Assembly (NCBI GenBank): GCA_965113315.1
Contig: OZ220367.1
Length of the DNA: 64,000 nucleotides
Direction: 5' to 3' (one strand)
Source: Podarcis vaucheri
Lineage: Eukaryota
Positions 293 to 57,900 of the stretch are shown one piece after another. Each line of letters starts with the position of its first letter. Position 1 is the first letter of the stretch. The notes beneath the pieces were generated by a model, which saw nothing but the letters and a program-made list of their open reading frames with translations, made no database searches and was not told the origin of the DNA. The position numbers were made by a program, and so were the translations under genes.

Positions 293-3200
293 ATGTCTCT
301 GCCGCTGTATAGTTGGAACATTAATGGCGCGAATTCCCCGGAAAAACGCAAAAGGATTTTCCATATTCTAAAGAAAGAAAATTTGGACATAATTTGTTTG
401 CAAGAAACCCATGTGACCAGGATACACAGGAAGGTGTTAATAAATAAAAGATTAGGCCAAGAATTCATCTCATCAGATAGAGTTAAGAAGAGAGGCGTGG
501 TGATCTACGCCAAGGAGAATTTATCACCAAAATTTTTGTTCAAAGACGAACAAGGAAGAATTCTGGCTATTGAAATATCAACTCAAGGAGAGAAAGTTTT
601 GATATTAGGAATTTATGCACCAAATGAGGGGAAATCAGAATTTTATAAGAAGCTGCATGAGACACTACTGGACTACCTGGACTATTCCAACATCATTATG
701 ATGGGAGATATGAATGGGGTTGTCTCCACTTTTATGGATAAGTCACAGAATCAGAATTTGACCAAAGATGGAAGACTACCAAAAACTTTCTTTGAACTAA
801 CTGACAATATGGATTTAATTGATTTATGGAGGACGAGAAACCCCCTAGGTAAAGAAGGAACTTTCTTTTCTGAGGCCCACCTGTCATGGACAAGAATCGA
901 CCAAATCTGGGCAACTAGAGGGCTGGCACCTAAGACTACAAAAATAGAAATCTGCCCAAAGACTTGCTCCGACCACAATGCTTTGAAAATGGAAATGAAA
1001 TTTACTACTGCCGACTCCTTTAGATGGAAAATGAATGACAACCTGTTAAGAGATCAAGAGATTGTAAAGAAGGCCCAAAAAGCCTTAAAGGACTATTTTG
1101 AAATCAACTTGAATACCTCGGTGGAAAAGAGAATAATCTGGGACGCAAGCAAAGCTGTCATGAGAGGGTTCCTGATACAACAGAATACGATCAAGAAAAA
1201 ACTTTGGAATGGTAAAAAGGACAAGATATTGGAGAAGATAAGAGATGGAGAGAAAAAATTAAGATTGAATCCAAAATCAAAAGAGACTTTAAGAGAAATC
1301 AAATTTCACCAGTCACAATATGCGAAATTGATTAACCAAGAAGTGGAATGGAAAATCAAACAAATGAAACAAAGATCTTTTGAATCTGCGAATAAATGTG
1401 GGAAACTGCTAGCTTGGCAGTTGAAAAAGAGACAAAAATTAAATTATGTTACCAACTTAGAAGTTGAAGGGAAAAACATTCAGAAACCGGGAGAAATTAG
1501 AAAGTGTTTCCAGAAATATTTTAAAAAACTGTATACACAAGAATCCGAGGAAGCAACTGAGATAGAACAATTTTTGAAAGACAACGGCCTACCAAAACTA
1601 TCTCAAGAGAAGAGATCAATCTTGAATTGTAAAATAACACAACAGGAAATCGAGGATGCCATTCAGAATATGCAACTAGGCAAATCTCCAGGCCCTGATG
1701 GACTCACCTCCAAGTACTACAGGATGTTAAAAGACTATTTGATACAACCATTAATGGAGGTTTGCAACCAGATTATGGGGGGAGGGAGGGCACCAGATAC
1801 GTGGAAAGAAGCATTCATCACACTGATACCTAAAGTGGAAACTGAAAAGACTCAACTTAAGAACTACCGCCCCATCTCACTCCTAAACGTGGATTACAAA
1901 ATATTTGCGGATGTTTTGGCTAACAGATTTAAAAAAGTATTAAATGAAGTAATCCATAAGGACCAAGCAGGCTTTCTCCCAGGTAGACATTTGTTTGATA
2001 ACACCAGGAATATTATTGATACTCTGGAACTTTTACAAACAAATATTAACACCAAAGCAGTGTTAATTTTTATTGATGCGGAGAAGGCCTTTGACAACAT
2101 TTCTTGGAAATTTATGAAGAAAAACTTGGAAGGGATGGGAGTGGGAAGGGGGTTTGAGAATGGAATAGAGGCAATCTATTCAGAACAAAAAGCTAAGTTG
2201 ATAGTGAACAAAGTGGTGACAGAAGAACTTCATATTGAAAAAGGAACACGCCAGGGGTGCCCCTTATCCCCTTTATTGTTTATTTCAGTCCTGGAGGTTT
2301 TGCTGAATATGATAAGGGAGGATCGGCAGGTACAAGGAATACGGGTCGGAGCGAAACAATATAAACTGAAAGCATTTGCAGATGACTTGGTTTTAATATT
2401 ACAGGAGCCAGAACATAGTACAAAAAGAGTTTTGGAATTGATTCAGAAATTTGGTCGGGTGGCGGGTTTTAAGCTGAACAAACAAAAAACCAAGGTGTTA
2501 GGGAAAAACTTGACAGTTACTGAAACAGAGGGGTTTCAGAAGGAAACAGAACTAAACATTGTTAAAAAAGTGAAATACCTGGGGGTCAATCTGTCTTCTA
2601 AGAATTTGAATCTATTTAAAGATAACTATGAAAAATGTTGGTCAGAAGTCAAAAAAGATCTAGAAATTTGGTCAAGATTGAAACTATCCTTGTTAGGCCG
2701 AATTGCAGCTATAAAAATGAACGTTTTGCCAAAGATGTTGTTCTTGTTTCAAGCCTTGCAGATCGTGGACAGAGTGGAATGTTTTGGAAAGTGGCAGAGG
2801 GATATTTCTAGGTTTGTCTGGCAGGGCAAAAAGCCCCGAATAAAGTTTAAAATACTAACCGATGCAAAGGAGAGAGGGGGGTTTGCCCTGCCAGACTTAA
2901 GGTTATATTATGAAGCTGCGGCCTTCTGCTGGATGAAAGATTGGATTTTATTGGAAAACACTGATGTCCTAGATCTGGAAGGCTTCAATAATTCGTTAGG
3001 TTGGCATGCGTATTTGTGGTATGACAAGGGGAAAACACATGGAATGTTTAAAAACCATATTGTCAGAAAAGCAATATATATGGTCTGGAAAAAATACAAA
3101 GACTTATTGGAAAGTAAAACTCCGAGGTGGATTTCACCAATAGAGGCCAAAGCTCGGAAAACACCCAATATGGAGGCATATTGGCCGAAATATTGGGAAA

Positions 3201-4033
3201 TAATAGAAAACATTGGAGGTAATTGGAGGTTGCAGAGCTTTGAAAAATTAAAGGATAAGGTGCAAAATTGGCTACACTATGCCCAAATTAATGAGGTTTT
3301 TAAGCTAGATAAAAAAACAGGATTCCAGGTGGAAAAATCGAAACTTGAGACAGAGTTGTTAGAACCAAAGACCAAGGTATTATCGAGAATGTACAACTTG
3401 CTGCTTAAATGGAATACTCAGGATGAGACAGTTAAATCAGCCATGATAAAATGGGCTCAAGACATTGGTTACAATATTATGTCTGAGGACTGGGAAAGGT
3501 TATGGACCACCGGTATGAAGTTTACGGCATGTAATGCCTTGAAAGAAAACATTATGAAAATGGTATACAGGTGGTACATGACCCCAGTCAAGCTCGCTAA
3601 GATATACCATTTGTCTGATAATAAATGTTGGAAATGCAAGGAGGCTGAAGGGACATTCTTTCACCTCTAGTGGACTTGTCCAAGATTGAAGGCCTTTTGG
3701 GAAATGATCTATAACGAGTTAAAAAAGGTGTTTAAGTACACCTTCCCCAAGAAACCAGAGGCCTTCCTTCTGGGCATTGTCGGCCAGAAGGTGTTAAAAA
3801 AGGATAGAATTTTCTTTATGTATGCTACAACAGCAGCAAGAATTCCCATCGCTAAGCATTGGAAGACCCAAGATTTGCCCACACTGGAGGATTGGCAGAC
3901 GCAATTGATGAACTACATGGAACTAGCCGAGATGACTGCAAGGATCCGAGACTTGGGAGAAGAGGCAATGGAGGAGGACTGGAAAAAATTTAAAGACTAT
4001 CTGCAAAAGTATTATAAGTTGTATGAAACATAA
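293..4033 (+). pseudogene. L1 ORF2 (APE endonuclease + reverse transcriptase + C-terminal Cys/His domain) with one premature stop at 3668-3670
   Basis: SWNING, LQETH, GDMN and SDHN endonuclease motifs; GPDG, YRPISLLN, QGCPLSP, FADD and YLG RT motifs. ORF 293-3670 and ORF 3686-4033 are in the same frame, separated only by a TAG in CWKC...HL*WTC. Confidence 0.95.
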
Positions 4034-6774
4034 GACGCCGTATGATTCGGAACGTTAGCCCCAGCAACGAAATTTATTATCTATGAAATTGATAACATTC
4101 ATGAAAGAATCAAAGTTTAAATGGGTAAAAACGAAATTATGTTATATTTTTAGAGTAAATGGAGAATAAGAGATTTAAACTTAAATTGCAACTGAAAATA
4201 TAAAGAAACACACGAAATAAGGGTATAATTTGCTGATAACTTTATTATCAAGAATGCATTATGTGGGAGATGTGGGGAAGTCCAATGGAAATTTGAAATA
4301 AGTTGTTGAAATGGTTGTGATTTTCTGTTCTTTTTTTCTTTTTTTCTTTCTATATGTCTATTCTTTTGTTCTTTCTGTAATTTGGAAAAAATGCAATAAA
4401 AATTATTATAAAAAAAAACAGAATGCTTGAAATTTTTAACTGACTGGCTAACATGTGAATAATAAAAACAATAGTCTCTGCCTGCCAACTTCTGACCCAA
4501 GTAACACAATACAAAAGGAGAAAGAGATGAGAAAGGAAGAGGAGGCAAGCACACACCAGTTACTATCTAAGTTTAAGGACTAGCTGTTTAGGGAGATGTT
4601 GTTCTCATAGCAGGACAGGTAGAAAGGCCCTTCCTCTCATCTCTCTCTTTGCTGTGGCCTGATAGAATGGTTGCTGCCATGTGGTGGTTGAGGAATAAGC
4701 CTGATGGAGTTGGTCTTCCAACAGAGTTGATAGAGTGGCCCTGCTTCCCAGAGTTCCCTCTGAATTAATCAGCCATTAGCTTCACTAACAACTGCTTTGT
4801 AAACGAATTCCTTTTTGATGTTTATGGATGTTTAAAGAATCTATGTCCCAATCAGGCACTGTTATTGTCCAATGTGAACTCATTATGGCTCATTGGGTAC
4901 AGAGGCGTTTTATTTCCATAGGAAAGCTCTTGCCGACATGTGACAGATATGCTGTGTGAAAGGTTGCTGTGAATACCTGCTTTATATGCCTTGTGACTGG
5001 TAAATGGTCACACTGAAGTGGTTAATCGTTGGACCTCTGCTATCTACTCTCGCAGAAGTCAAAGAGCAGTGATTTAAGAGGGTTGGGGGATGAGAACTCG
5101 GATACATCACTCATCTTAAATCTACAGCCATGCGTTGCAGTAGAAAATTAGCTTATTCTTCAAGCCACAGAGATAGACTGAATTGCTTAATAACCAGAAA
5201 GTGATGAGAGATAGAAAATTGAGTGCCGGGGAAGGAATCAAAAGCATTCAGTGTGTTCCCTTTTGCAAGCAAACGGAGCCAGATGAAAACAGAGAGGCTG
5301 AAAAGCTGCTGAAGGTTCAGCCTACACAAGCAGGCTCTCTTCTGTACTTTCCCCCCTGCTTCTTTAAAATGGGATGTGAGGCTCCCTCAACACAGAATCC
5401 ATCTACCGCACAAAGAATACATCCCCACTTGACAGGAATGAACAGGTGTAACAGGCTGCTTTCTCTTACCATCTGACAACACTGCTGACTCAAATATTTT
5501 TCTGTACCCTTAAAAAGAATCTGCTTATACTGTCTGATGAAACTATCCCTTTGTTTTGCTTTCCCCCCTGCCGTTTATTTTTGTGGCTATTGGATCCCTC
5601 CTTTTAAAGCGTAAACTCACTGGTTTATTTTTATGCTCATTACTGAGGAGGAAAACAACCCTGACACTTTGCACAGAGGAACAGCAGCCTTATCATTAAA
5701 GCTGGGTCAGGAGGAAAGTCCTAGCTGCAGCAAGAGCTTCCTCTTTGGCTGCTTCTTGAATGGTTTACTTGACTTGAATTCACAATGGCAGAAGCCATGG
5801 GAGCTGGTTCAGAATGTCAGCAACCTCTCTGCTCAGGGTTGCCCATTACAGCACTATTAGGCCATTGTTTAAAGATTATAGATTGGGTTTTGTGTGTCAG
5901 CTGGCATATGGTGGGATGTTCTGTTACCATGTGCCCTGGTTGACACGCCTGTGTGCACTTTTCAGACACGGACCCTTAACATTTGGAGAGGAATTTTGAA
6001 TGTTGTGTTAATGCTGGTGTTCAAGTGCTACTGAAATCTGATGTTCTTTTTAAAGAGAATTGAAGAGGCCTGAGACGATTGTATTCCAGAGGAGAGCAGT
6101 GAATTTTATCAAGAAGAAATTAATGAAACAATTTATTTAAAGCACTTAATCCTAACCAGAATTTATGGTGCTAATAAATGCTCAGAACTGTTCATTATTC
6201 TGGCAACTATAGGTAAAAGCAGGAGCTAAGCAGAAAAGCAAACATGTGCTGTAAAATATCCCAATTCTCTAGTAAGAATATGGAAAGGGGGTGGGGGAGA
6301 GGAAGTTGGGCACAAATAGATCGTTTTAAAGTGATTATTTTTGCAAATGCTAGGAAGTTGGGCACAATTAGAGGGTTAAAAATTGATGTAAGTGTTAGGG
6401 GTTTCTGGGATGAGATGGGTAGAGAAGAGAGCAGGTTTCCAGGGGGTGCAAATAAGTGAGGATAGCAGAGCAGAGGAAGAGGTGCTTTTCTTGGGGCAGG
6501 GGCACAGTGTGTCATGAGGGAAGGTATGTGAATAATGCAGTGGTTTGGCAAAGAGTTAAGAGCTGAAGAGCTTATGCCTTAGGTGTGCAGAAAAACTAGG
6601 TTAGAAACAGAACAAAATTCGAGGGGGTGTGGAAATAGAGAGGTGATAACTTTTGTTGGCTTATGGACCAACTAAGTAAAGAGGAAGGAATTAGTGGAAC
6701 TCGTTACCTTTCATTATCTGCATAGCTGACTGGTGGTGAAGTGGAGGCAATTGGGCTCCAGTAATGAAAAGGGA

Positions 6775-12877: not shown

Positions 12878-13306
12878 GCTGAGACCACATAACACCAGTC
12901 ATGAAAGACCTATATTGGCTCCCAGTATGTTTCTGAGCACAATTCGAAGTGTGGGTGCTGACCTTTAAAGCCCTAAAAGACCTCGGTCCAGTATACCTGA
13001 AGGAGCATCTCCTCCCCCATCGTTCAGCCTGGACACTGAGGTCCAGCTCCGAGGGCCTTCTAGCAGTTCCCTCACTGCAAGAAGTGAGGTTGCAGGGAAC
13101 CAGGCAGAGGGCCTTTTCAGTGGTGGCACCCGCCCTGTGGAATGCCCTCCCACCAGATGTCAAGGAAATAAACAACTATCTGACTTTTAGAAGACATCTG
13201 AAGGCAGACCTGTTTAGGGAAGTTTTTAATGTTGGAAGTTTTATTCTGTTTAATATTCTGTTGGAAGCCACCCAGAGTGGCTGGGGTAACCCAGCCAGAT
13301 GGGCGG

Positions 13307-13364
<58 letters not shown>
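12878..13364 (+). mobile_element. L2-type LINE 3' fragment with (TAA)n tail
   Basis: Translates as DHITPVMKDLYWLPV...RAFSVVAPALWNALP, typical of the L2/CR1-group ORF2 C-terminus; ends in a TAA microsatellite tail. The 5' boundary is approximate. Confidence 0.85.
13309..13364. repeat. (TAA)n microsatellite, about 18 units
   Basis: Read directly; forms the tail of the L2 fragment. Confidence 0.97.
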
Positions 13365-14102
13365 TATCTATCTCTGAGGACAGCATAATTGAAGTTTGAG
13401 AACCATTGTGGCAATTTCTGGATTTGAGTACTACCTGAGACTACTCAGCACTGAAAGGCTGAAAGATTCCAACAGGCAAGAAGTATCATACATGCAGACA
13501 GGCCCAATGCCAGCATTGTTTTGCAACTTTGAAAATGAGCAACCCATGTCTACATTCAGCTCCTGTGTAGCAAAACATAAGCTGCTTCACGTTTAGGGTG
13601 ACTGTGAACACTGGAGCCATCAAAGGAAGGGAAATTTCTGATTGATACCTAGAACCTCATCTCCTCAGCTGCATTGTTTGTTAGATCATAATTACTGCGA
13701 ACCTTTTTTTTCCTCTCTGAAAAAATATATATAATCGGTTTGAAACAGAAATATCCAGATGACTGAACAGACCAAGACTATATGTATGGATATATTATTC
13801 TAGAATCTGTTTCAGGCAAACTCAAGAGGAGGGCTTCAAGGACCAGTTTAGTATGGTGTCAAATAAGAAATCCTAGGTAACTTAGTAACCACCAGATGAT
13901 CCTAATTTTTATTGGTTTTCCATGTAGAACTGATATGTGTAAATATATCCCTTTGAGCTGTTGATTTTAAACTTTGTCAGCTAAAATGACACCACAGCTA
14001 TGCAATACAATAGAAGAAAAGGCTTCTTTGCAACACGTAATGGAGAATATTTTCACTCTCCGACCTTCATACATGAATGTAAAATTTCTCTCTCTGTTTC
14101 AG

Positions 14103-14181
14103 AGCCATTATCAACCATTTCAATCCAAAGATAGAGTCTTACGCAGCTGTGAATCACATCTCACAGCTTTCAGAAGAACAG
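14103..14181 (+). CDS. ARMH3: ARMH3 (C10orf76) coding exon, third from last
   Basis: Polypyrimidine tract + TTTCAG acceptor, GTAAGT donor; encodes (R)[26 protein letters not shown] and joins in phase to the next exon. Confidence 0.93.
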
Positions 14182-50434: not shown

Positions 50435-53234
50435 CCTTACAAGTTCCTTCTCAAGTAGATGCTTTTTAGGGTGAATTTTGCATCAAGGCCAGAGCCAGAC
50501 TTCCTTCTTTAGGGACGAGGAGGCTGTGGGAAGTTTATACCTGTGCATGGGGGAGAGAACATGATCGATACTGAGGACTATTTTGTTGAGTCCAATGGCT
50601 TTTGAATTCAACAGCCAAAGCAATTCTATGCGAAAGAGTCAATTGCTGGCTCTTGAATCCTATATCTAGAATGGAGTGTAGATGCCTAGCAAATATTTAG
50701 ACTGGCAGCAGGGCAAGATCTTAAACCTGCCGTGATCAAGCAAGTCATGTGACATGAAAGGAAGGAATGTCCTATGTAAACTATTGAAGGCCCATCTGAT
50801 TCCAGTTGTACAGCATGACAAATAATTATATATGAAATTTCTATGCCCTGCAGAAAAATGTTAGCCCTTTGATCTAAGCAGAGCGTCTCGCCTGCATCAA
50901 AGGAACAAGGCACTTTGTCCTAGGGTACTGTGAGCCAACTCGGTTTCAACAGTGTTTGCGTCTAAGGATTTGCTTTTGTGTTGTTGAGGTGTGCCAAAAG
51001 CACATGGGACCTGTTCCGTTTTTCAAAGTGGATGGGGAGTCTGAGCATTGTCTTCTGGTGGAGGTCTCTCATCATCATCATCACCACCATCTGGCTGGGT
51101 TTCACCAGCCACTCTTAGACCTTATCTGTTTTTGTTTCTGGCGTGCTTGCTTTGCCTCTGTCATATTTGCTGGTTTTGGAGCCAGCTGTAGCACTTGAGG
51201 TCGGCCAAGTGGTACAGCTGAACCATATGGCGTGAAAGCATGGATAACATGATACCCTTCAAGACAGTGACTTGCTGCCCTACCTTGTCTGCAGGAAAAC
51301 ACACCCACACATAAAGCAGCACTTGGTGCATAAGGATCATGATGGATGATGGGCCTCTAGCATGGGAATCCATCTGGGGTCAGCCTGGCACTTTTGCAGT
51401 TTTGTATTCACATTTCCTGCCTTAAAGCACCCTGTTGTCTAGCTGCAAGCTGCCATGTGGCACAACACATTTCACCGTGTTGGCATAAAATAAGGCTGCC
51501 AGCCTTAGCTCAGAACTCTCTGTGTCCCTGATTCACAGGTGGCCAGTTCCTCAAAGGGGGTGTGCAAGATTGCACTTCACAACATGGAAACAATGTAAAG
51601 CCATGTTCCCTCTCCCTGCAGCCCCAGCCTTTGGCTCTTGTTGAACTATTAGCTTCCAGCAAAGCATTTTTCACACTTCTGGTTAGCAAGCTGCATTGAT
51701 ACACCTTTTGTGGGGTTGGGAAGCGGCACAGCATTTTGGGGGGAGGGGCTCATTTGACTTGTCTCCATACAGAAGATGATTCCTGTTGCTTCTGTTGATA
51801 TGCATTCCACATCTATGCATATTTACACACGTTGGCCCCGCTCAGTTCAGTGGGACTTACTGCCTAGTAAATGTACACAGTGGTGTTGTGGGGATTCTTT
51901 TGCACACATACCCCTTTTTGCAGAGCATGCATATGCAACGTTGGGGAAATCATTGCTTTAGACTAGAGAATGAATTCAGGCGCTCCGTTTTGTTGATAAA
52001 AATGTGCCCTGTCTCAAATGGTTTACACTGGCCTCTCAGTCTTAGAGAATAATTCAGGCCCAGGCCATTCCAGAGACAAAGATAAATGCATTTCCCACCC
52101 TACCTTGCTAATCATTCTGGGCAGAGTTGTGCCACCTCAGGCCTTTGATTCATTTCCCTTAAACGCTTCCCTTCCTTTCTGATCTACCTAGTTGCTGATG
52201 AAGTGCAGCCTGGTTCAGGCTCCTTCTCCTTTGCCCCTCTCGGACTAATTGAATTAAGCGGATGGGAAGTGAATCCAATTGACTAGATTAAATGAGCTGG
52301 GCACAGATCTGGGAAGAAATCAGGGCCTTGGAAGCTGAGCAAAGGAGCGCTTCCTCTGGCCACAGCTCTTCCGCTGCCCCATGAACTGCACCCCCCTAGG
52401 TGCCGTCACTTCACCACCCTTTGCCTTTTGCTTAACCTCTCATCCCTGGTCTTCCAGCAGCCCCTGCTGGGAAAGTGCAATGGCTCCCGTCTCCTCAGAC
52501 ATTTCCCCCCTCACTCTCTTCTGTTGCGCAGAGCCTCCTTACTCTCCTAGGTAATTAGTGGTTAATTAGCCAAGCTGTCTGACTTCGGCATGGCCCCCTC
52601 CACTCACGCTTCCCTCACGCTGGGCCTCAGGGCTGTGAGTGTGTAATGAACTGCAGGCTGGGGAAGGCCCCAGCCACATTTGCTCATTTAATTTCTGCTG
52701 CATCAGCTTACAAGCACATTGGATTTGAGGCTCTTGCTGTGCTGGAAGGGGCTTGGGACCTCCAAGCTGTTAGGTTTAAGCTGCGCTCCGGGGAGCAAAC
52801 GCTCTGGTGACAAGCACCAGCTGGGGCTGGAGGCTGGTGAGCACTGTCCTCTTCAATGCCAGCATTCCCAGACTGGCTTTCTCTCCCCGCCCCGCCCCCC
52901 ACTCCCGCCTCCAAGAAGAACTGTCCCTAGATACTTCCATACATCTGCTGCTAGTGGAGGGAAGAGCATGTTTGTGAGGATGAAACACACAGTCTCCATT
53001 TCCCTCTTTCCCTTTCGAAAGTGAGTGGAGACGCGGTGCAAACGCCTCTAGAAATAATGATAATCTGAAATGGAAGGTTTTGCCTTTTACACTTGACATT
53101 CCTATCTGGTCCATGTTTAGGATCTCCCAAGGTCTGGGTAACATTTTCATAGGTGCCGACTCCATGGGGCTTGAGGGGGCCCGAGCCCCCTCAAAAATTC
53201 GTTTGGGGGGGCTCTGCCCCCCCAATAATCTCGG

Positions 53235-53500
53235 GCGCCCCTCCAGCAGAGCGCCGCCGCCGCGCTGGCTCTGCCTGTCGACGCTTGGCGCGTCCGCGGC
53301 TTTTATAGGGCGCCCAGCGCGCACCAGCTCGATAACGGGCACCGGCGCAGCGGGGGGCGCCGGGCCGGGGGCGAGGGGCGGCCGGCCTGTCTCCTTGGCA
53401 ACCCCATTGAGCAGCGCCGGCTCCCCCGGGAGGGCCATCCCCCCGCGCCGCCGATCGCCAACACCGCCGGCGCTGTGGCTGCCGGAGCCCGAGCCCGAGC
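53235..53500 (-). pseudogene. TAL1: Captured fragment of a TAL1/SCL N-terminal coding exon (no bHLH domain)
   Basis: RRGGMALPGEPALLNGVAKETGRPPLAPGPAPPAAPVPVIELVRAGRPIK matches the TAL1 N-terminal motifs LLNG(V/A)AKE and P(P/V)VIEL as recalled from human and chicken. Preceded by a (TTCC)n tract + CTGACAG acceptor; truncated at the transposon arm. Confidence 0.8.
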
Positions 53501-53513
53501 CTGTCAGTCAGCC

Positions 53514-53540
53514 AGGAAGGAAGGAAGGAAGGAAGGAAGG
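53514..53540. repeat. (GGAA)n microsatellite; polypyrimidine tract of the captured acceptor on the minus strand
   Basis: Read directly. Confidence 0.9.
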
Positions 53541-53965
53541 AGAGAGAAATGGGGAGGGAGACGAGGGAGGAAAATTGCGCGCAGGGTGAAGAAAGGAGAA
53601 GGGCGAACGAGACGAGCTTCCAACCCAAAAAAGGGCTGGAAGACTTGGAGGATGAAGGATCGGGAAAGAAAGCGACGCCTTCCCCGCCCACGACGTCGCC
53701 CACTTGTCATTGGCAGCGCAGCGGGTGCCCAGAGAGGCTGGGCACCGGCGCAGGGCCGCTCCGCAGCCGCGGAGGACAGCTGCACGGCTAGCAAGGTGCG
53801 CCGCGTAGAGCGCGGCCCTTGTGTGGCCCGGTGGCCACGCAAGCTCGGGTGGGGACCCCCATGCGAATCTAAGACGGGAGAAGAGGGCAGAGCAAAGGGG
53901 GTCCCTTCCCCAACCTCCAGCTCTGAGACTTCCCTGCGCCCCAGAAAAGCGAAAGGATTTTCTCT

Positions 53966-54983
53966 CTCTCTTTTTTTTATAAATATTTTATTAAGTTTTC
54001 AAATACAAAGTTAGAAACATACACTGAAGAATAAAGTAAAAGAACAAGAAAAAGAAAAAAAGAAAAAGAAGAAAAGAAAACCAACCATTCAACACATTTT
54101 TTATATAACTAACTGGACTTCCTCGCATCTCCCTTACCCTGCATTCTTTATAATAAAGATATCAGCAAATTATTACCTTGTTTCGTACCTTATTTTGTAC
54201 TTTTCAAATACTATACCTCTAAATTTAACATACTTTTCATCAGTTACTTATATCTTAAATTAAACATAGTATTACCTTAGATTTTGACCTTTTCTTACTT
54301 AAAATATAATTTCCTGTTTCCCAAATCTAATTGCTGAAGCTATAGTTTCCGAATCGTGTAAATTTTTAACATTCATACAACTTATATTGTTTTTGTAAAT
54401 AGTCCTTAATTTTTTTCCAGTCCTCTTCCGTTGTTTCTTCTCCCAAATCTCGGATTCTGCCAGTAATTTCAGCCAGTTCCATGTAGTCCATCAATTGCGT
54501 CTGCCACTCTTCCAGTGTGGGCAAATCTTGTGTCTTTCAATATTTTGCGATAAGTATTCTTGCTGCTGTAGTTGCATACATAAAGAAAGTTCTATCCTTC
54601 TTTAACCCTTTCTGGCCAACAATGCCCAAGAGGAAGGCCTCTGGTTTCTTGGGAAAGGTATACTTAAATACATTTTTTAACTCATTATAGATCATTTCCC
54701 AGAAGGCCTTCACTTTTGGACAAGTCCACCGGAGGTGAAAGAATGTCCCTTCAGCCTCCTTACATTTCCAACATTTATTATCAGACAGGTGATATATTTT
54801 TGCAAGTTTGACTGGGGTCATGTACCACCTATAAATCATTTTCATAATATTTTCCTTCAAGGCATTACATGCCGTGAATTTCATTCCGGTGGTCCATAAC
54901 CTTTCCCAGTCCTCAAACATGATGTTATACCCAATATCCTGAGCCCATTTTATCATGGCTGATTTGACTGTCTCATCCTGAGT
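53966..54983 (-). mobile_element. 5'-truncated L1, same family as 1-4418, nested inside the hAT element
   Basis: ORF2 C-terminus nearly identical in protein to copy 1 (TQDETVKSAMIKWAQDIGYNIM...), premature TGA at 54537-54539, AATAAA (minus strand) at 53987-53992, A-tail, 10-bp TSD GATTTTCTCT (53956-53965 / 54984-54993). Confidence 0.95.
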
Positions 54984-57900
54984 GATTTTCTCTTCAACCT
55001 GCCCTCCATCCTCTTGCGGAAAACTCTTTGCCTGCCCTGCCCTGCCCGTATCTCGTTTTTGCTTTTTAATTCCACACACGCACCCTTCGGACTTCGTGGC
55101 AATCGGGCGCGCGGGTGCGTTTCCTAAGAGAGTGAGGACCCCCGCCTCCTCCCCACCTGCTCCCTCGCCAGCCAGCCAGCCGCGTGCCCTAGCAATCGGC
55201 TGGATCTCCCTTCAGCAGGCCGGGCTCACAACTCGGCCCAGGGACCCCCCAGCAGCGGATCTCCGGCCCAGCTGAAGAATCCGGCAACAAGCCCCCTCCT
55301 CCCCAATCGCTCCGTCGAAATACGCTCCAAAACCCCCCAGATAGGCCGCCGGCCGCCATGTCTCGTGGCGCCCTGAGCGAGGGTCTCTCCCCAACACCGC
55401 CACCTCGAACTGTGTTCTCCCGGCTACCCGAGCGAAGCAGCGGCAGGACCCCGGTATGGGCCCCCCCAATATTTTTTATAAGTCGGCGCCCCTGAACATT
55501 TTTATTAGCTGCTTTGAAAATTGAGTGTGTCTGGGTCCCCACACACTCTGGATTGTTTAACCTTTTCCTCCAAACATCCATCTCCTGATGTAATTTCCCC
55601 CACACCCTGCCCCAAACTATTTTTTAAAGTCAGGAACACCATCTGCACCTTTTCCTTCCCCCGCCCCAATGCCTCACTACTCATGGAGATAATAACAATG
55701 GGGGGGGGGAGGGATTTACATAAGGGAAAGGACTAAAACCCTGTCCAGAGTAGCCACATGAGGGTGCTTATTTAGTTTTCTCCTTCTCCTTAACACATAC
55801 TGTAATCCTAATCCCAGATCTCCAACATGCCAAAGTTACACAAGAACAGCCCTATACTACCCAGCTCCCTTGCTGATTTGGAAACTCAAAACATTTGCTA
55901 TCACCATCTTGCCACATTTTAAATCCCCGATAGGCTGCAATATTTGCCAGCAAACATGGAGTTCCTGTCCATGAAACTGACAAGTAATCTATACACTGCC
56001 ATTCATACTTAGCAGAGTTTTTAAAACTCACCTATCCAGCCTTAAAGATTATTATACCAAGTAATATAGAAGCAGAGGACAGGAAATGAACCTCCCTTCT
56101 TGAAATGCTTCCTGAATTGCGGAGGTGGCTGTGGCCTTCCCTGCAGAATGGGATGCCAATCTTGCTCATAGGTAGCAAGGCTTTAGGTTAAAATCAAACC
56201 AGGTATTATTGTTGTTTATTAAATATCTATACTGCCCTTTATCCGAGGATCACAGGGCTGTTTACAATATAAAACACAACACTATTCCCCACTTCAAAAA
56301 GAGGAAAAATTAATTATGGTAAAATCAAAATGGAACATCAATTGTCCAAGATTTAGATCATGGTGATTTAATATCCTGTGCTTGACTTTTCCCACATAGT
56401 TAAGCCATAAGAATGGAAATCTGCAATTAGCTAAAGGTGTGCTTAATAATGGTGATCAATGCTCTGTCTTTACTTAATGAGCTGTTAAATTGCATCCCTG
56501 AGATAGATCACTAAGACCAGCCTGCCATTGTAGCTGGGAGGTGAAGTGCTGTGTTGCAATGGTGAGGGCATTGTGCTCTCTTTCTAACACAGATACACAC
56601 CATGCTTTCCTCCTAGCAGGACTGAAAGGACTTGATAGCAATGTTCTTCATTTGCCCTCTTGATTTACAAAGTCCCAGTGTTTTGGTCCTGAAGGGTTAC
56701 TATGAATATGGTCTCATAAGTTTCCCACTAGCCTCAAACACTGCAGCGAGACTGTATCTCCTGCTGCCACCCCCCATAGCCTTCTTTTATATCCAGGTGA
56801 TTGTAAAGGCCTTCTAAGTGCACAACAAGCAACCCAATTGCTTTCGAGCTCAGGTTGATTCAGCCTTCCAGCTGCAAGCTTTGAACATAATGCTCTTGCA
56901 AGATATGCTGGTCTATTATTGAGGTGTATGTGATGGATTTGTTATCTGATCTGTACCAGCATTTGAATAAGCACTCTTTCACAGCTGCTTTTGTTTTAAT
57001 ACAGCCAAACAGCAGCAACAAGTGATGGAAGATGTATATAACTGCATGCTGTATCTATTTTGGCTATGTTTGCTAATACATCAAGGCTGTTGGAGTCCAT
57101 TCTTTTTGTGTCTAAGCCTTTGTGAAATGCTCCAGGCCAGAGTAAATCAAGTAGCCACTGGAGGTTTAGCATTGAGGTGAAAGCTATTTCAGACAATGCA
57201 GGTATGACTCAAAGCAGCTTTACGTCCTGCAAAGAAGTCACTAAACAGGAATGATTCTGTCATCTTAAAAAATGGTCTTTATTTCTTAAATTCAAATGTA
57301 TGCATGGTACACTCCCTTCTATTGATCTTGTAACAAACTGAAAGAAATGCAGAGAGGAAGAGTTGGTTTTGCGCACAGAGCAATTAACAACCAGAACAAG
57401 TAAAAACTACCATCTCCAACAAACCAAATGGAAAGTGTACCCAAATGGGTATGTGGTTTGTTTTTTTTTGGTGCCAGGAAGAATGAATTATTCCCACTTG
57501 GGGGGGGGCAGTTCACACATGCATGAACATCACTTGATGACATGCAACTGACAAGTCTTGTCTATGCATGCAGCAGAGTGAGCTGCTTGAGTTCTGAGGT
57601 TACATAATGGATTTTACCACTTCCAACTAGGGCTGAGGAAGGAAACCACTTTGATGTTCAAAATAAATAAATCCCTGCAAATAGCAAAGTATGAAGCAGG
57701 CTGCACCAAAAGCTTTATTCCTTCCATGTTATATGTCTGTATGTGTTTGTCTATATGTCTTTACTGTTTATATGGAGGAGTGTGGGATTTTGCCTAGGGG
57801 AGACCTGAAATTGCACCCACCCACCCCCTACACCCGCAGTATGAAATGGTGCAGTCTGTCACTGTCACAGGATTCCAGTTCTAAATATATGAACCTACTC

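Follow-up and report, generated by a model that had tools for sequence, protein, structure and literature searches.

Pack-TIRs are known from animals as well as from plants. In the survey of Tan et al. (2021, Nat Commun), 100 animal genomes yielded 370 Pack-TIRs, of which 208 are carried on hAT elements and 4 are multicopy (PMC8277862). The described example Pack-hAT-N8_XT, from Xenopus tropicalis, holds a 291-bp piece of the CAPSL 5'UTR in hAT-N8_XT and is present in three copies; lizards are absent from the discussion in that text (PMC8277862). Plant Pack-TEs are usually not highly repeated (review PMC8616336). Among lizards, Anolis carolinensis harbours hobo-type hATs, autonomous and non-autonomous, which incorporate extraneous DNA from the genome and go on to amplify it (Novick et al., 2011; PMC3014272).

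The locus described here lies in a stretch of 64,000 nucleotides of Podarcis vaucheri DNA (the window). It bears, on the minus strand, a piece of TAL1/SCL. The piece is read as the cargo of an amplified, non-autonomous, hAT-type Pack-TIR (transduplication) element, of which the window holds one insertion; the probability of this reading is put at about 0.88. Like animal Pack-TIRs, the element is a non-autonomous TIR transposon with a few hundred base pairs of the 5' region of a host gene between its TIRs, with a TSD around the whole unit and with the insertion missing at relatives' orthologous sites (PMC8277862). Unlike them, it is present at several hundred copy equivalents, and its cargo comprises protein-coding TAL1 sequence together with promoter-like pieces. 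Gene-fragment transduplication, sharp breakpoints, mosaic cargo and a TSD that proves a single mobile unit are shared with the Pack-MULEs and Pack-TYPE elements of rice and Arabidopsis (PMC8616336). The plant carriers, in contrast, are Mutator, CACTA and Harbinger elements, and the hosts are plants. Pack-MULEs and Pack-TYPE elements prefer GC-rich 5' gene ends, a trait which the TAL1 element shares. The hobo-type elements of Anolis carolinensis are, like the TAL1 element, lizard hATs amplifying acquired DNA, a likeness of description; their filler, unlike that of the TAL1 element, consists mostly of other repeats, and host exons are without mention in PMC3014272. The TAL1 element is thus a Pack-TIR, of a kind known in animals, unusual mainly in its high amplification. 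It is further set apart by its cargo, coding sequence from the gene for a developmental transcription factor.

On the minus strand, (TTCC)7 at 53514-53541 is followed by CTGGCTGACTGACAG and then by the open frame GSGSGSGSHSAGGVGDRRRGGMALPGEPALLNGVAKETGRPPLAP...VPVIELVRAG; the frame after CTGGCTGACTGACAG begins GSGSGSGSHSAGGVGDRRRGGMALPGEPALLNGVAKETGRPPLAPGPAPPAAPVPVIELVRAGRPIKAADAPSVDRQSQR.... The earlier note had described this order, a (TTCC)n tract and then a TAL1-like frame, and sequence and translation bear it out. Its derivation of the frame from TAL1 also holds, the best matches being TAL1 of Podarcis raffonei and P. muralis. Identity to residues 36-113 of the P. raffonei protein is 72/78 amino acids (BLASTP, E 3e-24). 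In a word-indexed protein search, residues 1-70 of the ORF match 18 proteins, headed by TAL1 of the same two species; all named proteins among the 18 are squamate TAL1, and the single unnamed one, P0006, reads as a TAL1 N-terminal exon. An 87-aa fragment has five matches in 1.84 billion representative proteins (HMMER), all of them genuine sauropsid TAL1 N-terminal exons. The 78 TAL1 N-terminal residues of the fragment include the motifs LLNGVAKET and PVIEL. The resemblance to TAL1 is far beyond chance.

In a multiple alignment of 16 orthologues, the fragment matches Podarcis TAL1 at 70/78 positions and the TAL1 of Rhineura, snake, gecko and Anolis at no more than 63/78. It carries SGSHS, GGVGD, GPAPP, VRAG, KAAD and APS, states that are confined to Podarcis TAL1 among the 16 orthologues compared. 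Such Podarcis-only residues place the capture in the lacertid lineage. The corresponding region is conserved across all squamate TAL1 proteins, with core motifs extending to birds; the direction of transfer is therefore from gene to transposon. Complete TAL1 genes are present in related lizards (protein search).

No bHLH exon is found when the whole 64 kb is scanned in six frames for its motifs (RERWR, QQNVN, LSKNE or similar), which agrees with the earlier note. Compared with TAL1/SCL and its paralogues TAL2 and LYL1, the fragment shares the 78 N-terminal TAL1 residues; it differs in being without the bHLH exon and residues 1-35, frameshifted (the PDLGLG homology stands in another frame), multicopy and transposon-borne. 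It is neither a gene copy nor a TAL1 paralogue. The string TATAAAAG at 53303-53310, considered as a promoter, was ruled out; it encodes the P-I-K-A codons of TAL1 itself.

The TAL1 breakpoints were placed at the protein level, against TAL1 of other species. At the right edge, TAL1 homology finishes with ...RQSQR at 53262. The same position is the point at which other repeated internal sequences branch from the 3' backbone (loose ends 53256-53263, agreement 0.84-0.97); the junction of cargo and backbone is therefore set at 53262/53263. At the left edge, upstream of CAG, a different frame gives T-D-R-L-G-L-G, matching P-D-L-G-L-G of TAL1. The left breakpoint therefore falls near codon 34, within the coding exon, and a frameshift accompanies it. 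An alternative offered earlier, a decayed 'MTDR' start followed by a frameshift, is thereby half right: the frameshift stands and the start codon does not. In squamates and birds, TAL1 from Met1 to about residue 200 is a single uninterrupted frame (genomic ORFs P0006, P0020, P0022). TAL1 is therefore without an intron before residue 36, and the pyrimidine tract with CAG is not an inherited splice acceptor, as it had been taken to be in the earlier note.

Coordinates of the carrier and its parts are collected in Table 1, together with the read depths discussed below.

Table 1. Parts of the TAL1-bearing element, its target duplication and nested L1, and summed contig depth in run X1 (a depth ratio, not a formal copy number). 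Positions are those of the window.
Feature	Position	Strand	Description
TSD, upstream copy AAAATGTT	55495..55502	(-)	same 8-mer at both ends; one copy at empty site
5' TIR CAGGGGCGCCGACT	55481..55494	(-)	11/14 vs reverse complement of 3' end
5' subterminal sequence and GC-rich cargo A	54994..55480	(-)	CpG-island-like, Kozak-type ATG
Nested 5'-truncated L1 3' end, AATAAA and poly(A) tail	53966..54983	(-)	own 10-bp duplication AGAGAAAATC
Cargo B, GC-rich promoter-like block (CCAAT, GACGTC, GGGCGGGG) ending in (TTCC)7	53513..53955	(-)	GC 0.63, CpG o/e 0.79
TAL1-derived segment	53262..53512	(-)	codons ~34-113 of lacertid TAL1; frameshift near 53490; two private non-synonymous changes
3' backbone	53148..53261	(-)	degenerate internal copy of 5' TIR motif, two perfect 10-bp-stem hairpins, 3' TIR (53148-53161)
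TSD, downstream copy AAAATGTT	53140..53147	(-)	adjoins 3' end of element
Flank, depth in run X1	52400-53141		flat ~90 (one bin 96, last bin 110)
3' end of element, depth in run X1	53142-53247		1.0-1.2 million, ~11,000-13,000x flank
TAL1 piece, depth in run X1	53301-53459		60,000-82,000, ~700-900x single copy
Depth in run X1	53566-53975		42,000-122,000

The TAL1 piece lies in a non-autonomous DNA transposon, probably hAT-like, 53148-55494, minus strand; length of the TSD and form of the TIRs point to the hAT superfamily. The element starts with CAGGGGCGCCGACT at 55494 and finishes with AGTCGGCACCTATG at 53148, so that its termini are CAGGGGCGCCGACT...AGTCGGCGCCTATG. With the family majority letter at 53154, the match between the TIRs rises from 11/14 to 12/14. 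Host-gene sequence is thus found between TIRs and within one TSD, as in a Pack-TIR. A TSD with a 14-nt TIR pair of such quality occurs once in the window; 3 of 20 shuffled windows (~15%) also gave one, and the pair taken alone is suggestive and not proof of a transposon. The block 54994-55494, made up of cargo A and the 14-nt 5' TIR, has a GC content of 0.64 and a CpG o/e of 0.84; in the flanks CpG o/e is 0.10-0.24. Within cargo A, at 55150-55360 (minus strand), a Kozak-type ATG at 55361-55359 opens MAAGGLSGGFWSVF..., and a donor-like CAG|GTGGGG is seen near 55157. By these features cargo A looks like the first exon of another gene. The 3' subterminal 114 bp have a DNA fold of -36.6 kcal/mol (z -4.0). 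An Rfam scan of 51000-57000 at E 0.1 gave no RNA family. No transposase is found in the window, nor are other copies of the termini or of the cargo within it.

The termini of hAT elements follow the rule YARNG, and the hAT TSD consensus is nTnnnnAn. The 5' end of the element, CAGGG, fits YARNG; the 3' TIR starts with CATAG, one position off, and the TSD AAAATGTT departs from nTnnnnAn. A Pack-type transposon of another superfamily with 8-bp TSDs (e.g. P, Merlin or the Mutator-like group) would suit both departures as well as the lack of a visible transposase, and is nevertheless unlikely: the combination of an 8-bp TSD and short TIRs of the CAG type is seen most typically in hATs, which are the dominant active group of DNA transposons in lizards (PMC3014272), and hAT is the main carrier of animal Pack-TIRs (208/370; PMC8277862).

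An empty site is present in another sample. In run X16 (organism C), a 422-nt contig tracks the flank as far as 53147, and its next 30 letters agree with 55503-55532 at 28/30. The contig joins both flanks with a single 8-mer; it is therefore the empty site in a closely related organism. The filled site is seen in run X1, where a contig of depth 90 enters the element by 24 letters, below the 31-letter bridging rule; X1 is possibly the sample behind the assembly itself. The flanks of the two organisms, one with the filled and one with the empty site, differ at ~1% of positions, and the insertion is therefore recent or polymorphic.

These contigs bear on the reading of the locus as an assembly chimera, with GC-rich TAL1 reads misjoined into it. 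GC-rich first exons are often misassembled, and the sole contig over the border of flank and element is the one that reaches just 24 letters into the element. Such a misjoin would have to account for exact TIRs with a TSD, for a nested L1 with a TSD of its own, for an empty-site allele in another organism that fits both flanks exactly at the TSD, and for the same cargo junctions being covered by family contigs in four runs from three coded organisms. It is extremely improbable.

The element belongs to a large family. Read contigs were compared with 52400-53975 of the window, which covers the flank and the 3' half of the element, and depth is given as summed contig depth and not as formal copy number; 3,649 contigs were placed in run X1. 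The rise in depth falls exactly at the end of the element, 53148. Dozens of contigs end at 53147/53148, at the 3' end of the element, and run on into mutually unlike flanks (agreement 0.36-0.47); the terminus of the repeat is therefore the end of the TIR. Depth over the TAL1-bearing part indicates several hundred copies, and that over the terminal 100 bp about ten thousand, both as depth ratios and not as formal copy numbers. Cargo B, from its depth, therefore belongs to the repeated family as well. A homologue search with the 120-aa open segment (candidates of 66-210 aa) was empty, so that other copies leave no trace among database proteins.

The 3' backbone is joined at 53256-53263 by three or more further repeated internal sequences, some of them GC-rich. 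This suggests that several cargo types share one 3' backbone. Six letters (GCGGTG, plus strand) replace the 49 bp 53238-53286 in the TAL1-bearing contig that dominates in runs X11 (organism F) and X16 (organism C). The depth of this replacement form is 1257.9 in X11; a similar form is rare in X1, at 58.7. The form is a deletion-derivative subfamily without the last TAL1 codons.

The earlier note had taken the piece for a one-off orphan capture, moved at the DNA level and not as a retrocopy. The second half of this stands: the piece is part of one exon, with no poly(A) behind it. A processed retrocopy does not fit a partial single exon without a following poly(A), and the poly(A) near the TAL1 piece is that of the nested L1, an insertion with a TSD of its own. 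The first half does not stand. A unique orphan duplication, in which TAL1 N-terminal exon, upstream intron and splice acceptor were copied to a place near ARMH3 by a segmental or repair-mediated event with no transposon, agrees with the confirmed TAL1 origin, with the missing poly(A) and with the pyrimidine tract and CAG before the piece. It disagrees with the position of the piece between TIRs with an 8-bp TSD, with the clean empty site in a relative, with a depth over the piece of ~700-900x single copy, with genomic ORFs that have no intron before TAL1 residue 36 and with TAL1 homology that persists 5' of CAG in another frame. The orphan duplication is largely refuted and is very improbable; the piece is cargo of a transposon bounded by TIRs and a TSD.

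The nested L1 entered later. Copies of AGAGAAAATC flank it at 54984-54993 and 53956-53965. Its sequence is 82% identical to 3416-4417, where a full-length L1 of the window has its 3' end, and the ORF2 C-terminal translation matches. Having its own TSD inside the GC-rich block, the L1 is therefore a secondary insertion and did not bring the TAL1 piece in. A 3' transduction by the L1 was ruled out as the source of the GC-rich block, the 10-bp TSD of the L1 being internal, with GC-rich sequence on both sides. The other L1, near full-length at 293-4420 (plus strand), opens with a 1125-aa ORF2-like frame (293-3670); a separate C-terminal piece of 115 aa (3686-4033) follows, then a 3' UTR and, near 4410-4420, a poly(A) tail. 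This L1 is possibly young. The 82% identity between the two L1s therefore indicates at least two L1 lineages.

The copy in the window has decayed. It shows 10 private differences from the family majority in ~730 bp, 6 of the 10 being CpG to TpG or CpA changes; its private letters include 53316A, 53349A, 53372C and 53374A. The changes at 53372 and 53374 turn P-S of TAL1 into L-A, and the family majority restores PPPSPGP. No sign of selection was found on the TAL1 piece of this copy. The private changes are neutral decay and not constraint. An ORF of 220 aa, opening at an internal Met and running from 53438 down to 52776, passes through the TIR into the flank; it is therefore an accidental ORF.

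Transcripts were sought in RNA run X23, from the organism whose sample X16 has the empty site. The reads map chiefly to the high-copy terminus and come from both strands. Over 53142-53300 depth is up to 126, and 96% of the reads run on into unlike sequence; transcription or read-through therefore affects many members of the family. At most four X23 reads touch the TAL1 part, all with family or TAL1 letters and not those of the window copy. The organism is without the insertion, and X23 therefore says nothing for or against expression of the window copy.

The piece was also weighed as a functional exon or small gene, in which the 220-aa ORF would serve as a TAL1 N-terminal decoy peptide expressed from the promoter-like cargo, or the piece would be spliced into a host transcript. 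Upstream cargo with CCAAT, GACGTC and a GC box lies on the same strand, an ATG opens the 220-aa frame, the GC-rich block around the TAL1 piece is island-like (GC 0.63-0.77, CpG o/e 0.8-0.95), and some animal Pack-TIRs are transcribed as chimeras (PMC8277862). A functional product is nonetheless quite improbable. The frame continues through the TIR into random flank, two private non-synonymous changes are joined by the frameshift upstream, the insertion is absent in a relative, the few X23 reads on the TAL1 part include none with the letters of the window copy, the sole ARMH3 exon identified lies on the other strand, and no chimeric protein model containing the piece occurs in the 1.84 billion representatives searched with HMMER. 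The TAL1 piece of the window copy most likely does nothing as protein-coding sequence.

The host setting agrees, if weakly, with the earlier note, which had named ARMH3. A canonical 79-nt exon at 14103-14181 (plus strand; pyrimidine tract-cag|...CAG|gtaagt) is present; its match to positions 156-184 of Pfam ARMH3_C is weak (E 0.0087, 16.3 bits, under the curated cut-off). Taken at face value, this exon indicates that ARMH3 lies on the plus strand. The TAL1 piece is 39 kb off and on the strand opposite to this sole ARMH3 exon identified; transcripts of the exon's own strand therefore could not use CAG|G. At 12937-13440 a repeat-like ORF (..ALWNALPPDVKEINNYLTFRRHLKADLF..) is followed by a long trinucleotide run that reads as poly-L, -Y, -N or -I by frame, probably an element of the SINE/LINE-tail type.

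The history proposed for the TAL1 element is as follows. A non-autonomous transposon, probably of hAT type, acquired at the DNA level a copy of ~250 bp of the first coding exon of lacertid TAL1 (codons ~34-113), presumably by gap repair or template switching. In the resulting composite, a 5' TIR is followed by promoter-like, GC-rich cargo, by the TAL1 piece and by a hairpin-rich 3' backbone with the 3' TIR. A transposase acting in trans would have mobilised it to several hundred copies. The copy in the window is one insertion of this family; it made an 8-bp target duplication and received the L1 insertion later.

A false lead is removed by this reading: the locus is neither a displaced or split TAL1 gene nor a new paralogue of it. 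In its place stands a well-anchored vertebrate case in which a cut-and-paste transposon has transduplicated gene sequence, complete with TIRs, TSD, empty site and an identifiable parent gene. Multicopy Pack-TIRs are very rare in the animal survey (4/370; PMC8277862), in contrast to hundreds of copies of the TAL1 piece. If the pattern is general in the genome, it bears on the shuffling of exons and CpG-island promoters by DNA transposons in vertebrates; it would also be a risk to annotation, where hundreds of TAL1-like matches may be misread as pseudogenes or exons. It is possible, though doubtful, that the lizard lineage hosts a capture-prone, highly amplifying hAT system, in which one backbone carries CpG-island 5' exons or promoters of many genes, each to hundreds of sites. 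If so, vertebrates would have their first high-copy Pack-TIR system, one that could scatter CpG islands or promoters throughout the genome and whose sense, antisense or small RNAs could act on the parental genes, TAL1 included.
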